A stretch of 62,976 nt of DNA, counting the filler, from Pelomyxa schiedti (Eukaryota; Protista; Evosea): the NCBI GenBank assembly GCA_020536535.1. It is 15 parts of 15 records of this genome, joined end to end, with 100 filler letters (N's around TTAATTAATTAA, not from the genome) between each part and the next. Parts side by side here need not be neighbours in the genome. Positions count along the whole stretch, not along the records: positions 56,230 to 62,976 come from JAHLWZ010001397.1; 14 more parts are not named here. One strand, written 5' to 3'. A program made the translations under genes and the position numbers. Shown here piece by piece: positions 56,230 to 62,976 of this stretch. How positions within the stretch are numbered: the stretch's first letter is position 1; each line of letters starts with the position of its first letter. Under the pieces are notes generated by a model, which saw only the letters and a program-made list of their open reading frames with translations, did no database searches and was not told the origin of the DNA.

Positions 56230-56538
56230 CTACTGAGCCCGGACATCCGCCTCACCAGGATGTCCTTGTGTCAGTTAACAACAATGTACTTGAGTTAATG
56301 TATTGAGGTAATGCAATGCTGTAGTAACCATTTGAAACGAAACAAAACACCAAGTACCATATGTCCAACGCCGTTGGTTTCCCTTCCTCAATGAAGTCGT
56401 ACCTAAAAAAACAGAGTAAACAAAAACAAATATACATCGGGGATAGGCAAGGTACAAGTGTTTGGTGGCGCCTGTCGACACTTCAACAACTTCAAAGTTG
56501 GGCAGCGGTTTCCCAATGCAGTCCCTTGTCGTTGACAT
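56230..56538 (-). CDS. Thioredoxin-fold TlpA/redoxin-like protein with in-frame UGA at the active-site Cys position (probable selenoprotein), 3' truncated
   Basis: Exons 56538-56456, 56402-56358 and 56264-56230 with GT-AG introns give MSTTRDCIGKPLPNFEVVEVSTGATKHLYDFIEEGKPTALDIWTSW-TGA-GGCPGSV. Confidence 0.8.
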
Positions 56539-56764
56539 CTTGTTGGTTTGTCGGTTGGTTTTTTTTTTTTTTTTGTGTTGAGCAGTCTTGTTGACCAGAA
56601 GAAAATTCCGAAGCTTTGGTCGCATGTTTGCACAACGGGGGGATTGTTATCGATGAGTTGACTCAGGGAGCGCGCCAGGGAATTTGTTCCTGAGTCGATG
56701 GGTAGAGGCAGAAATCACCACATCAGAAATCACCCCTGCCACCATCATAACAAAAACAAAGACA

Positions 56765-57778
56765 ATGTCGTACGGTAAGTCAGAGACCAGCGACCTGAGG
56801 GGTAAAGTAGAGGCCCAATTAAACAGGTATTAGCTCTTATAACTGCCAATCGCCACCGTATAGTATTATAATCAGTCAGTGTTACACAACAAACATAATA
56901 AAAACGCGTGGGTGCGTGTTTCACTACCACGTAACGTATTATGGGACAGGCTGTTGGCCCAGTTGCAGGATTTGGATGACCTCCAGGATGTATGTCTGTT
57001 TTTAGAACTCGAAATATACATAAGCTGGTGAATAACTAACAAATGCTCGGACATATCTTCTATGGTTTAAGGATTCAATAGTAAATAATAGATGTATTGT
57101 TACGGGTAGTCACACTTACACACTATCACCAGGAGCTAGAGCCAGAGGAAATTGAAGATATCAAGGCTGACACCTTACAACAGATGCAAGAATTCGAGGC
57201 CAGTCTTGTAAAGATGATGTCCGGTAACATCACACTGGTTAATGAGATAGGCCTCACAAGACTTGTATGCTTCAATAGCAGTATTCCCCACAAGTATTGG
57301 TTTGTTAAAAAAAAAAAATAACAGGCTATCCAAGCGGCAATCAGCAAGGCCTTTAGGACTCCCGAGGTTCTCAAAATGTTTGCCAAAAAGGACTTGGGTT
57401 CACTCCGAAGCCGTCTATCATCCATTCAGGTTCCATTATTATCATACCCACAATCTTCAAATAATGATATCCACACACTCATGCCTCAACAGATGAATGC
57501 CCGACTAGGAAAGATACCCCGAGACCAAGTAGTACTAGATACTGTGGAGGTACTTGCCGCCCTTAAAAAGCTTGGTGAAAGGCTATCGCCGGAAGAACTA
57601 CATTTCCTACAGGAACATAGGTCACATATTATGGCTGATTTTGATGAAGTCGACAGTGACATAGGTAACAACAAAAATAGACGATACATGAAAAACTTAC
57701 ACATTATTCAAAGGTGTTGGAGCTAAAAGTGCCATTTTGTCCAATGCTGCCAACCAAATCAAAAGAGCCAAGACTTAA
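56765..57778 (+). CDS. LZIC: Leucine zipper and ICAT homologous domain protein, multi-exon
   Basis: GKSETSDLRGKVEAQLNRLLAQLQDL, MMSGNITLVNE, AIQAAISKAFRTPEVLKMFAKK, VEVLAALKKLGERLS. Confidence 0.9.
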
Positions 57779-57866
57779 GTCTCACCTCTTGTATTCCACC
57801 GCCAAAACTGCCATTAAAAGCATAAAAGTAAAAGAAAAATGATTGATGTTTGTGTAGTATTTTCTT

Positions 57867-59514
57867 TTACTCTTTCTTCTTTGCCAACATTTCATCAACA
57901 GAATACTTCCCAACACCATACTGGGCCAACAAATACAGCCCACCAGCAACACCAAGGTTTACAAGAAAATGGTCCCTGGCGTGCACTGTATATTTCTCAC
58001 CAAGGCTTGTTGCCCAGAACCGCCAATATGTAAATGCCTCAGTTACAAGCCTGCACAGGATAAAGGCTTTGGTTAGAAATATAAATTTTACATGGAATGT
58101 GCATACAGAGAAGCCAGTGCTAGGGCCGTTATCGTTGCTTTGTAACCGACTGCAAAGGGTAGTGCAATTAATGCTTCAAACAGTTTTAGCCACATTTGGT
58201 TGTGGCCATCTCCGGGAACATATGTTCGTACATTGAATTGTTCTGGATGTGTCCGCATCCACTACAACATAAGTTTAGCAGCATTTGAGAGGTGGCATAA
58301 ACACCTGTCGTAGAATCTCGCCATAGCCAACAAAGAGGAAAAGGCCAGAAATTAGAGCTCGAACAATGAGTAAAACAACAGATGTTGCCTGTGAAACGTG
58401 GTACCGTGGCTCATCTGGACCTATCAGACCCTTCAATGCCCTGGAATAACAAATGAGTGAGCCAAATGTAAGGGAAAAAGAGGGAACCGTTGGGTTATAT
58501 CAACTTTTTTCTTAAAATGCGGCTCATTGACGAGCACCATAATTATACAACCAAGCATAGAAAGCTTTTTGGTCATCAATTCATTAATGTACAAGGAATT
58601 GCCCAGGAATAGCCACTGCAAAACTGATTGAATAATGGCCGGGTAATAAAAGAAGGAAAACCTGAAAGAGCCGAGAGATAATTATACTGCCAGCATCAAG
58701 GCCCGCCAGAAGAGCTAAAACAACACCAAAACCCCAGTATTGTGGAGCAAATGCCAGCATGCAAGCGCACACAATAAGTGGAATGGCGGTCAAGGGAAAC
58801 ATCCCCGCTGATTGCACTTGTTGCTGCACAAGATAAGTAATTCTTAACACCCATTTTATCGTTCCATGAATCACATATCAATTCCACAACAAACACAAAA
58901 TCACACAAGAACGAAGAAACTTTATATATAAATATCTCCCATTTTATCTTCGCATATCTCGTATCTCGTATCTCTATACACACAGACAGACAGACAGACA
59001 CACTCACGCACGCACGCACACACACCGGGACCGCTCCAGCCACGGCGGCGGGCTGGGCAATGAACGCCTTCACCCAGTGCACCAGGTAGCTGCCCCCCAG
59101 GTTGCCAAAGTACGCGCACACCGCCAGCTTGGCCAGCACGCCCAGCCCCCGCCACTCCCACACCACCCACAACGCCGTCTTGCGCCGCCGCTGCGCCGCC
59201 CGCGCCCACCACCCCCGCGCACGCTCCCACACCCCCACCCCCGCCTTGCCCGCCCCCCCCGCGCTGTACGACGAGGACGACGCGGACGCGGGGCGGGGCC
59301 CCGAGGAGGCCCCCCCGCCGTGTGTGGTCGTTGAGACGACGCCCCCTAGCGTGGACGAAGACGAGGGGTAGGACGACGAGGAGGAGGGCGACGATAGAAG
59401 CGGGGGCAGCAACGACGACGAGGAGGAGGAGGACGATGGGGGGGAAGAGGAGGAGGAGGAAGCACTGTCAGAGGAGTGGTGGTGGTACGACGACGATACC
59501 TGCCTGCCGTGCAT
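57867..59514 (-). CDS. SURF4: SURF4/Erv29 (DoxX-like) ER cargo receptor with Ser/His/Gly-rich N-terminus
   Basis: VVLLIVRALISGLFLFVG, NELMTKKLSMLGCIIMVL and RDHFLVNLGVAGGLYLL...GVGKYSVDEMLAKKKE*, with a C-terminal dilysine ER-retrieval motif. An alternative ATG lies at 59565. Confidence 0.78.
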
Positions 59515-60088
59515 GGTGTTGGTTGTGTGATGGTTCTCTTGCAATACTGGTTTCTTCTTCTGCACCTCGAACCTCCCACGTCATCGGGGTGNNNNNNNNN
59601 NNNNNNNNNNNNNNNNNNNNNNNNNNNNNNNNNNNNNNNNNNNNNNNNNNNNNNNNNNNNNNNNNNNNNNNNNNNNNNNNNNNNNNNNNNNGAGGAGTGG
59701 TGGTGGTACGACGACGATACCTGCCTGCCGTGCATGGTGTTGGTTGTGTGATGGTTCTCTTGCAATACTGGTTTCTTCTTCTGCACCTCGAACCTCCCAC
59801 GTCATCGGGGTGAGACAAAGGGGAGAAGCCCCCACTGGAGGGTCAGAAAGTTGTGTGTCCAGTGTCTGGAAACGAGTCGTTGTTCCTGTCTGTTCAGTAA
59901 GAATTGTGTTCCATCGACTTTATGAGAAGCATACTGTAAGGAGCCACTGTAAGTCTTACGTGGTGCACGCGAAATCTACTCCTAACCAATACATTAATGC
60001 CCTGCGACCAACTAACAGAGAAACCAAAGAAAAGGAAAAAGCAATCACTCTCATAATCTTATCTCACATCCAACGAGAGCATTGAGCA

Positions 60089-61803
60089 ATGAGCAGCACC
60101 GGAAGTGCGACAACGACACCACAAGGGGACGTAAATGAAGTGGACGAGGCAGTGAGCGTCGCGGTGAAGGCGGCGATGGCCGAAGTGGCAAGTCGCATCG
60201 ACGCCGAGAGGCGCAAGTTCGAGGCCGAGCTCGACGAAAAACGCAAGGAGATGGAGACGATGGCCGCCGCGGCTGCCATCGCACAAGTCCATGCTAAAAG
60301 TGGGCTCTTTTCCTTTGCAGTGTTGTCGTGGACTGCGTTGTTTGTGGGTTTTTTTTTGTGTGTTTTTTTTTTTTTTGCTAACGGTACGATAATACAGGAC
60401 AACAAGAAATTTGCCCAATAAAGCTTCCTCCACCAGAGCCAAAGTCAGCCAGTACGACGACGGGCGGTAGCACTGCCTCGCCGGCCAGCACCTCGACACC
60501 CACGCCAACTCCAACACCAACGCCAAAATCAACACCACCGCCGTCATGCCCTGGTAGTGCATCCCCTTCTGCGGGAACTGCTAGTGCTTGCGATGGTACC
60601 TTTCAACCCTCTTATCTTTACACTTACAAAGGACCAGGGTGCGCACAGAAGGGAAGTTGCGGCAAAAGTGGTTGTGGAGGTGGTGCTGCGGCAAGTCTAG
60701 CCGCACAGACTTTGAAGGGTGACATTGAATTCCGGCTTCAGCTTGTCGAGCACAAGATAGTTGTGATGTCTGGTAGGTTATATTAATATTATTATTATCA
60801 CTTGTTCGTGCTCACTCACTTTATAACAACAGGAAAAGGAGGAGTTGGCAAAAGTATGCTGGCGTGTCAGTTGGCAGTTTCCCTTGCTGAAAGAGGTTTC
60901 CTGGTATCTGATTTCTTGTTTGAAGCAAATTGGTCTCACCTGAGTCAAGGTTGGCATCTTGGACATCGATATCTGTGGTCCAAGTGTGCCCAAGATGCTT
61001 GGGGTTCCTCATACAGGGGCGTTTCAGGTATCTTATGTGGTGTCCAACTGTATTTGTCACACAACGACAGGATAGCACAGGAATCAAACCAATCCGCGTG
61101 AATGACCACCTAGTTGTTATGAGTGTTTCCTTCATGATGGAAAACCCAAATGAGGCTATTATTTGGAGAGGTCCCCGCAAGCAAGGACTCATTCAAGTAC
61201 ATGATTATTACCGAAATTATGTTCCTTACCTGTAACAGGTTTTCCTGAAAGATGTTGATTGGGGAGTCCTTGACTACTTGATCATTGATACCCCACCCGG
61301 GACCTCTGATGAGCACCTGTCCGTTGCTCAGAACTTGGCCACAATTGGCATTGATGGCGCGGTAATGCTACTGTTTTGTTTCGGTTTCTTACTGATCCAC
61401 TCCCTGCAGATAATTATTACAACCCCACAGGAGGTAGCAATTCACGCCGTTAGAAAGGAAATAGACTTCTGCCGAAAGTCCGGAATTCCAATCATCGGAC
61501 TGGTGGAGAATATGGATGGCGTGATGTGCCCAATGTGCCGAGCGCACTTGCCGGTCTTCAGCCCAACAACCGGTGGTGGCAAGACCCTCGCCACCGAGCA
61601 GAACATTCCCTTCCTTGGTGCAGTTCCCATTGATCCCTTACTCGGTAACTTCCCCTCTCCCCTCCCCCTTCCAACCGAATCTGACCACCACCGCAGCACT
61701 GAGCGGTGACACCGGCAAGCCGTACTCAGCCACAGACTCTCCAGTGAAACCCGCGTTGGCCAAGGTAGTGGACAACATCGTAGCAGCCACCAACACCCAC
61801 TAA
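60089..61803 (+). CDS. NBP35: Cytosolic Fe-S assembly scaffold Nbp35/NUBP1, multi-exon
   Basis: Spliced [24 protein letters not shown] fits CX13CX2CX5C. Also [43 protein letters not shown] and GAVPIDP. Confidence 0.9.
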
Positions 61804-62203
61804 TGAGGACCCAAACCAAACCAAAACAACACAACACAACCAAATCCACGGGATTTGACCTGGTCACCAACAAGCCCACAGGGGTCCCTTTCGTTGCATT
61901 TGATTCCAATCGTTTTTTGATGTAAATAGAAATTCAGAGAAGAGATTTCGAACTGACCGTGCTGTGAATGACGTCGGTACCAGTACCACCGAGGCCGAGA
62001 ACGAGGGTGATGACTCCTGAGGAGAGACTCAGGCAGTTCATTGGCCATGTGCGCCTGGCCGACTTGGACGTGGTGTGTAGTGGCTGATAATTATGGGTGC
62101 GCGTCGAGTGCTTTTGTTGTTACTTGTTACGGAATAGAATATAGTAGAGACACATAGAATATAGTGTAATATAATGAAATCACATCACTTATATACAAGA
62201 TAG

Positions 62204-62894
62204 ATGGTTGCGAGGCATGATGGAGAAGTGGTTGTGAGGTGTGCACCACTGGAGGGGGGCTGGTCTAGATGGTCAACAGGAAGTGCTCCTACTGTGAAGA
62301 ACACTGGGATTCTTCCGAAGGAGATAAACTACCTGGCTAGAATCCTGTGCCCGCCAAGGACAAAGGTTTCCTTCCGGCTGTCTATTTGGGCTTCTTTCTT
62401 TTTTTTTTTACTTCTAAATTAAATTTTTACTTATTTTTATTAGGCTTCTGCCGCTTTTGAAGGGAGTGGGGACTGGCCAGAGGGAACACTTCTGGGGAAC
62501 ATATCCTTGGACCCACTTCTGCAAATATGTGGATTTTTGGACAACAGGGCACTCCTGGCATTCCAGCTTGTTTGCAAAACATGGCGGAACTTCTTTGTGA
62601 GCAATGAGCAACAAGTAAGCCATCCCCCAATGATTGTAGAATGACCTGAGCGACGCAATGAAGATATTCTGCTTGGTTTGCTTTCACAACGGAATAAAAG
62701 AAGTTGGTGAAAGTGTGGACTGGAAAGAGCTTTACATTCAGAACTTCAGAAACAATCTTGAGCGTGAAATCTCCCTCGTTGCAAAATTTCCATCCTTTCC
62801 GATACGAGGGAAAAAGTACTTCACAACCAAAATATCTGAGGACTGTATTCATGGACTAGCGGTTGCCTCTTCTCATCCCGTTTTCTTTTCCTAA
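62204..62894 (+). CDS. F-box protein, multi-exon (exon structure tentative)
   Basis: LGNISLDPLLQICGFLDNRALLAFQLVCKTWRNF (F-box), followed by a ...VDWKELY motif. Confidence 0.65.
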
Positions 62895-62976
62895 CAAAAC
62901 AAAACAAAACAAAACAAAACAAAACAAAACAAAACAAAACAAAACAAAACAAAACAAAACAAAACAAAACAAAACA
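62894..62976. repeat. (AAAAC)n pentamer microsatellite
   Basis: Perfect tract running to the end of the window. Confidence 0.97.

Follow-up and report, generated by a model that had tools for sequence, protein, structure and literature searches.

A spliced redoxin-like reading frame with an in-frame UGA at its first active-site position in Pelomyxa schiedti, a candidate UxxC selenoprotein

A candidate gene at the contig edge

The DNA examined here (positions 56230-62976, 6,747 nt, read on both strands) is contig JAHLWZ010001397.1 of the Pelomyxa schiedti assembly GCA_020536535.1. All positions are those of the window, the whole stretch of 62,976 nt. The preliminary description of this DNA had guessed that its source was an anaerobic amoeba, and P. 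schiedti is one: Pelomyxa, Mastigamoeba and Entamoeba form the Archamoebae, anaerobic organisms with reduced mitochondria. The NCBI record of the contig holds four gene models. None of them falls within its first 535 nt, where a redoxin-like candidate gene lies on the minus strand against the contig edge at 56230. The earlier claim that the annotation overlooks a redoxin-like gene is therefore correct, as NCBI has no model at positions 1-535 of the record. The features of the candidate gene and of its surroundings are as follows.

56456-56538, minus strand: exon 1, with the ATG at 56538-56536, encoding residues 1-27 and two bases of codon 28 (from translation)
56403-56455, minus strand: intron 1, 53 nt, GT..AG (GTACCT...TTTAG), with a T-rich tract before the acceptor (predicted)
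56358-56402, minus strand: exon 2, ending in …YDFIEEGKPTALDIW (from translation; last 25 nt present in an RNA contig)
56265-56357, minus strand: intron 2, 93 nt, GT..AG (GTACTT...ACAAG), spliced here in an RNA contig
56230-56264, minus strand: exon 3, cut by the contig end, reading T-S-W-TGA-G-G-C-P-G-S-V (from translation; RNA and DNA contigs)
56252-56254, minus strand: in-frame TGA in the place of the first (nucleophilic) Cys of W-C-x-x-C, the candidate Sec codon (DNA and RNA)
56243-56245, minus strand: TGT, the Cys at +3, putative resolving Cys of UxxC (from translation)
56539-56764: divergent intergenic region of about 225 nt between the candidate gene and the ICAT/LZIC-like gene, which stand head-to-head (from annotation)
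56765-57778, plus strand: ICAT/LZIC-like gene (NCBI annotation and RNA contigs)
Minus strand: SURF4, a 417-aa model (NCBI annotation)
Plus strand: NBP35/ParA-type ATPase (NCBI annotation)
Plus strand: F-box-like gene (NCBI annotation)

The three joined exons give a fragment of 54 codons, with 46 residues before the TGA and 22 nt, or seven open codons, after it. Its N-terminus reads M-S-T-T-R-D-C-I-G-K-P-L-P-N-F-E-V-V-... and its C-terminal part ...E-E-G-K-P-T-A-L-D-I-W-T-S-W-*-G-G-C-P-G-S-V. Upstream of exon 1 the same frame runs into an A16 tract that resembles a 5'UTR; a stop lies farther up. Of the other two frames through exons 2 and 3, one stops at once and the other at the very edge, and neither encodes anything recognisable. 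Both introns resemble seven RNA-verified introns of two neighbouring genes (43-143 nt, 60-73% AT, mostly GTA-type donors) in their lengths, their AT content and their GTA donors. The junction at intron 1 is placed by the GT-AG rule, by the reading frame and by a weak Pfam alignment that runs over it. Re-translation reproduced every coordinate of the splice model proposed earlier, including the TGA at 56254-56252 and the 22 nt that separate it from the contig end, and confirmed the observation of a spliced redoxin-like frame with an in-frame TGA.

Seven public runs match the piece, including single-cell RNA-seq libraries from the same study, and four of them were aligned over 56230-58700. A 7,373-nt DNA contig from run X1 covers the 56230-58700 stretch without a single difference and extends 4,351 nt beyond 56230. 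The transcript is represented by a Logan contig from the single-cell run X5 (record 3), which is 544 nt long, has a depth of 22.7 and runs 484 nt past the contig edge. In the alignment this RNA contig spans 56230-56272, with two mismatches in 56265-56272, and leaves a loose end of 17 nt, CAACGCCGTTGGTTTCC. Once decoded, it consists of 56230-56264, exactly, followed at the junction by 25 nt of exon 2, which is the predicted spliced mRNA. Because the contig holds the exact junction of exons 2 and 3, intron 2 has been removed from the RNA at the predicted sites. The length of this intron is a multiple of three and it contains no in-frame stop, yet it is absent from the RNA. Exon 1 and intron 1 are covered by no RNA contig among those listed for the four runs over 56230-58700.

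The 35 nt of exon 3 that carry the TGA are the same in the RNA contig (X5 record 3) and in the DNA contig (X1 record 1), and in the RNA contig the in-frame UGA lies within an expressed mRNA that is correctly spliced at intron 2. Reads with TGC or TGT at this codon, or a different splice pattern, had been named beforehand as observations that would count against a selenoprotein; the RNA of X5 and the DNA of X1 both read TGA and, for intron 2, the RNA junction is the predicted one. A sequencing error at the TGA was considered and rejected, since an independent RNA run carries the identical base.

The depth of the candidate transcript (22.7) may be compared with the 8-17 found for the neighbouring transcripts. 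That it is not below theirs argues against strong nonsense-mediated decay. The transcript continues for at least 484 nt beyond the contig edge, and if the TGA were a true stop, the 3'UTR would measure at least 506 nt. This would be unusual, as the convergent ICAT-like and SURF4 genes have only about 160 nt between them for both of their 3'UTRs. The length of the transcript would fit about 100 further codons followed by a SECIS-bearing UTR.

Fold, active site and known relatives

When the 54-residue fragment was scanned against Pfam with an X at the stop, two families were returned, both weakly. Residues 8-51 aligned with positions 1-42 of the 124 in the AhpC-TSA profile (PF00578), scoring 16.5 bits where the gathering threshold is 26 (E 0.0086). 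Residues 8-41 aligned with positions 75-108 of the 237 in T4_deiodinase (PF00837), scoring 16.4 bits where that threshold is 27 (E 0.0056). Both families have the thioredoxin fold and are peroxiredoxin-like. Matches under threshold are unsurprising here, because the fragment amounts to a third of a domain; a Pfam scan of the separate exon pieces gave no match.

The spliced frame follows the pattern G-K-P-x-P-N-F-x-V-V ... G ... L-x-x-F ... G-K-P-x-x-L-D-I-W-T-S-W-[TGA]-G-G-C. The elements G-K-P-x-P-N-F-x-V-V ... G-K-P-x-x-L are the strand-turn-strand with which TlpA-like and Prx-like proteins usually begin, and [DN]-x-W-x-[ST]-W-C-x-x-C is the signature of thioredoxin, TlpA, ResA, CcmG and tryparedoxin. 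In the candidate, D-I-W-T-S-W-[TGA]-G-G-C supplies the W-C-x-x-C site that closes the first hydrophobic strand, with the TGA in the place of the first Cys. The original reading of this region as a TlpA/ResA/redoxin motif is sound, and the AhpC-TSA match over residues 8-51 agrees with it, if weakly. Taken together, motif and Pfam match suggest that the candidate belongs to the AhpC-TSA/TlpA-like fold family. Since the fold appears to begin at about residue 8, with neither a signal peptide nor an anchor ahead of it, the protein would be cytosolic.

The T4_deiodinase alignment, prolonged without gaps, would put the TGA on the deiodinase Sec column. However, the deiodinase active site is S-x-T-U-P-P-F, with no Cys at +3, and the candidate's T-S-W-U-G-G-C does not conform to it; its W-U-G-G-C comes instead after the W-x-[ST]-W of the thioredoxin/TlpA type. 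The N-terminal pattern G-x-x-x-P-x-F ... G-K-x-x-L-[VI]-x-F-W-A-[ST]-W-C-x-x-C is common to the candidate, to bacterial TlpA, ResA and CcmG and to eukaryotic tryparedoxin and nucleoredoxin. All of these proteins use Cys where the candidate has TGA. TlpA, ResA and CcmG are membrane-anchored and periplasmic, while the candidate opens directly with the fold; the tryparedoxin and nucleoredoxin types are small cytosolic domains, as is predicted for the candidate.

Several families of known selenoproteins resemble the candidate more or less closely. The Global Ocean Sampling selenoproteome contains 'Prx-like 1' (pfam00578, UxxC, 225 sequences), 'Trx-like 1-3' and 'Prx-like 3' (UxxC) and a deiodinase-like family (PMC2398784). 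'Prx-like 1' and the 'Trx-like' families have, as is proposed for the candidate, a Sec in the first position of UxxC and a thioredoxin-like fold, and 'Prx-like 1' is of the AhpC-TSA family that is weakly matched here; they are, however, bacterial and have a bacterial SECIS directly after the UGA, whereas the candidate has spliceosomal introns and would need a eukaryotic SECIS in its 3'UTR (PMC2398784). Selenoprotein L, which occurs in aquatic organisms, likewise combines a Prx-like thioredoxin fold with Sec in a CxxC-equivalent motif, but has two Sec residues (UxxU), and the second position of the candidate is Cys (PMC2398784). Among eukaryotes, a survey of algae describes AhpC_b (UxxC, Thalassiosira oceanica), for which a prokaryotic origin was proposed, and a family of TlpA thioredoxin-like selenoproteins (PMC7539508). 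By description these are eukaryotic, like the candidate, and have an AhpC_TSA or TlpA-type domain with UxxC such as is predicted for it. They differ in lineage, being from stramenopiles and other algae where the candidate is from an anaerobic amoebozoan, and the algal TlpA selenoprotein also has a hemerythrin domain, while the candidate is known as a 54-residue fragment (PMC7539508). Within Amoebozoa, SPS2 is scattered (PMC4561486), and Dictyostelium discoideum has five selenoproteins (PMC2375036). One of the five is deiodinase-like, shares with the candidate an amoebozoan origin and has the Prx-like thioredoxin fold that is predicted for it; T4_deiodinase is the family that weakly matches candidate residues 8-41. 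Selenoproteins with UxxC on an AhpC-TSA/TlpA fold are thus already catalogued from marine bacteria (PMC2398784) and algae (PMC7539508), and what would possibly be new is an archamoebal member.

Searches for the sequence past the contig edge, or for a relative, gave nothing. Exact look-ups of 13 ORFs from 56230-59251, in a protein collection that excludes the P. schiedti Logan contigs, found no record, and a homology search of the protein collection with the exon 1 region gave no candidate. The 35 nt of exon 3 had 0 exact matches in the DNA of JGI metagenomes, and a search of metagenomes for related loci found no relative. We also approached the locus through its neighbour. A homology search with an ICAT exon ORF returned only the 191-aa NCBI protein of P. 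schiedti and two distant relatives. The closest ICAT homologue from outside Pelomyxa (57% identity) is eukaryotic and is found on a 627-kb ENA contig (ERZ21831265 ctg81988l) and on two Logan contigs. Its neighbours there are ankyrin-repeat and amino-acid-permease genes, and there is no synteny with the P. schiedti locus. Six-frame translation of its surroundings revealed no W-[C/*]-x-x-C redoxin motif, and synteny therefore yields no orthologue.

Interpretation of the in-frame UGA

We consider it probable that the candidate is truly a selenoprotein gene and its product a Prx-like/TlpA-like protein with a UxxC site. The piece would then hold the 5' portion of an expressed nuclear P. schiedti gene with introns, whose product would be a small cytosolic thiol/selenol oxidoreductase of the thioredoxin fold, AhpC-TSA/TlpA-like ('Prx-like'), with a predicted active site U-G-G-C. 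A putative SECIS in the 3'UTR, beyond the contig end, would direct the recoding of the in-frame UGA to selenocysteine. In the mechanism we envisage, a disulfide or peroxide substrate would be attacked by the Sec selenolate, and the selenenylsulfide so formed would then be resolved by the Cys at +3. This reading is favoured because the TGA occupies precisely the codon that specifies Sec in selenoproteins of this fold, with a Cys at +3, and because the mRNA is spliced, is covered no worse than its neighbours and is long. An Rfam scan of 56230-62976 was blank and showed no SECIS, as expected for a 5' fragment.

Two features mark the gene as eukaryotic, and on their strength a contaminating prokaryotic symbiont was rejected as its source: the introns are spliceosomal, and the head-to-head neighbour on this annotated P. 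schiedti contig is itself a eukaryotic gene.

Apart from selenocysteine decoding, several explanations of the TGA have to be weighed. The gene could be a nonsense allele or a young pseudogene of an ordinary CxxC redoxin, in which TGY became TGA at the first active-site Cys and which is still transcribed and spliced. A single transversion turns TGT or TGC into TGA and, with one study or culture behind all the DNA and RNA data, a fixed mutation of this kind would show in every run. Selenocysteine use in Pelomyxa, in Mastigamoeba or in Archamoebae at large was not found in the literature searched, which also speaks for such an allele, and selenium is nowhere mentioned in the P. schiedti genome paper and its supplements (PMC8887013). 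We nevertheless regard this explanation as unlikely: a random mutation must have struck precisely the codon at which the selenoproteins have Sec, the motif around the TGA is otherwise intact, and the transcript depth, not under that of the neighbours, is contrary to strong nonsense-mediated decay. Distinctly unlikely, in our view, is a TGA that lies within an intron. In that case TG|GTGAGG (56256-56250, minus strand) would hold a 5' splice donor, exon 3 would be a 9-nt micro-exon, the RNA contig would retain the intron and the mature mRNA would have no in-frame stop. GGTGAG is a classical donor consensus, minor variants are dropped from Logan contigs, and P. schiedti is very rich in introns, with 7.4 per gene (PMC8887013). 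On the other hand, the sole RNA contig over this spot among those listed, from which intron 2 is gone, reads straight through the 35 nt and on for 484 nt. The seven RNA-verified local donors are five GTA, one GTT and one GTG (GTGTTT), so that GTGAG occurs in none of them, and an in-frame G-G-C-P that restores the xxC after the TGA would have to have arisen by chance within the supposed intron.

A true stop, with the likeness to redoxins due to chance or left by a truncated relic, would leave a 46-residue peptide or nothing functional. It would agree with Pfam matches under threshold, with exon pieces that match no Pfam family by themselves and with the lack of an NCBI gene at the locus. We hold it to be highly improbable, given two independent weak Pfam matches to related folds, a multi-position motif that stops exactly at the TGA with a Cys at +3, and an mRNA that is spliced, well covered and long. 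Finally, the UGA might be read as a standard amino acid, with no part for selenium, either by near-cognate readthrough or under a code in which UGA is reassigned to Cys or Trp. The three neighbouring genes whose stops were read directly (ICAT-like, SURF4 and NBP35) all end in TAA, and the piece accordingly says little about termination at TGA. The annotated F-box-like gene does stop at TGA, however, and in-frame TGA is absent from the RNA-verified ICAT-like CDS (192 codons) and from the RNA-verified 3' exons of SURF4. The stretches of NBP35 that we read by eye spell Cys as TGY and Trp as TGG, and to our knowledge no change of the genetic code has been described in Amoebozoa. The P. schiedti genome was annotated with the standard code and nothing unusual was reported (PMC8887013). 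As no in-frame TGA occurs in the CDSs checked, one gene is annotated with a TGA stop and the genome paper uses the standard code, a reassigned UGA is unlikely on the small sample of genes in the piece, and decoding of the UGA as a standard amino acid by either route hardly enters into consideration. A Euplotes-type code (UGA = Cys) was rejected on the strength of a multi-gene contig with no in-frame TGA elsewhere and an annotated TGA stop.

If selenocysteine is indeed encoded here, as we favour, this would be the first indication of selenocysteine use by an archamoeba and one more point on the patchy protist map of Sec retention and loss. It would also mean that the public annotation of GCA_020536535.1 misses selenoprotein genes altogether. 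The enzyme would be one more UxxC selenoenzyme of the thioredoxin fold, with a mechanism that is not new, and it could bear on the handling of oxidants in a strict anaerobe with methanogenic symbionts. A more far-reaching version of this reading, in which P. schiedti, and hence the Archamoebae, keep a working eukaryotic Sec decoding system and the gene is a bacterial-type Prx-like/TlpA UxxC selenoprotein acquired laterally, with introns and a 3'UTR SECIS added later, seems to us unlikely. If true, it would represent a move of a selenoprotein gene between domains for which the recoding signal had to be re-invented.

Neighbouring genes and other features of the contig

The region upstream of the candidate, a promoter/5'UTR region that it has in common with the ICAT-like gene, contains the A16 tract on the minus strand at 56557-56574; the 18-mer of this tract is found again elsewhere on the X1 DNA contig. 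The ICAT-like gene itself (56765-57778, plus strand) is named 'Zinc finger protein' by NCBI. ICAT (PF06384) is the one Pfam domain in its product, which reads as LZIC-type, and the NCBI name looks like a mis-annotation. All five of its introns are confirmed by RNA contigs.

At two positions in SURF4, 58157 and 58160, both RNA runs (X5 and X6; 2023) have T and G, and the genome and the DNA run X1 (2021) have G and T. These are probably differences of strain or allele and not editing, because both are synonymous in a SURF4 exon. The annotated 417-aa SURF4 model includes, at 58696-59565 on the minus strand, a low-complexity Ser/Gly/Ala stretch with up to 71% GC, and exceeds by about 150 residues what we take to be the usual length of SURF4. 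The Logan DNA contig of run X1 stops within this GC-rich stretch, at about 59251. The N-terminal extension of the model may be unreliable. The stretch 59471-59812, immediately upstream of the model's Ser-rich 5' end, consists of a scaffold gap of 100 N (59592-59691) between two identical copies of 121 nt (59471-59591 and 59692-59812). These copies look like an overlap left unmerged, an artefact of assembly, and not like a true duplication. The contig ends at 62893-62976 in a perfect (CAAAA)n of about 17 units; it matches no telomere repeat known to us and is probably a microsatellite that halted assembly.
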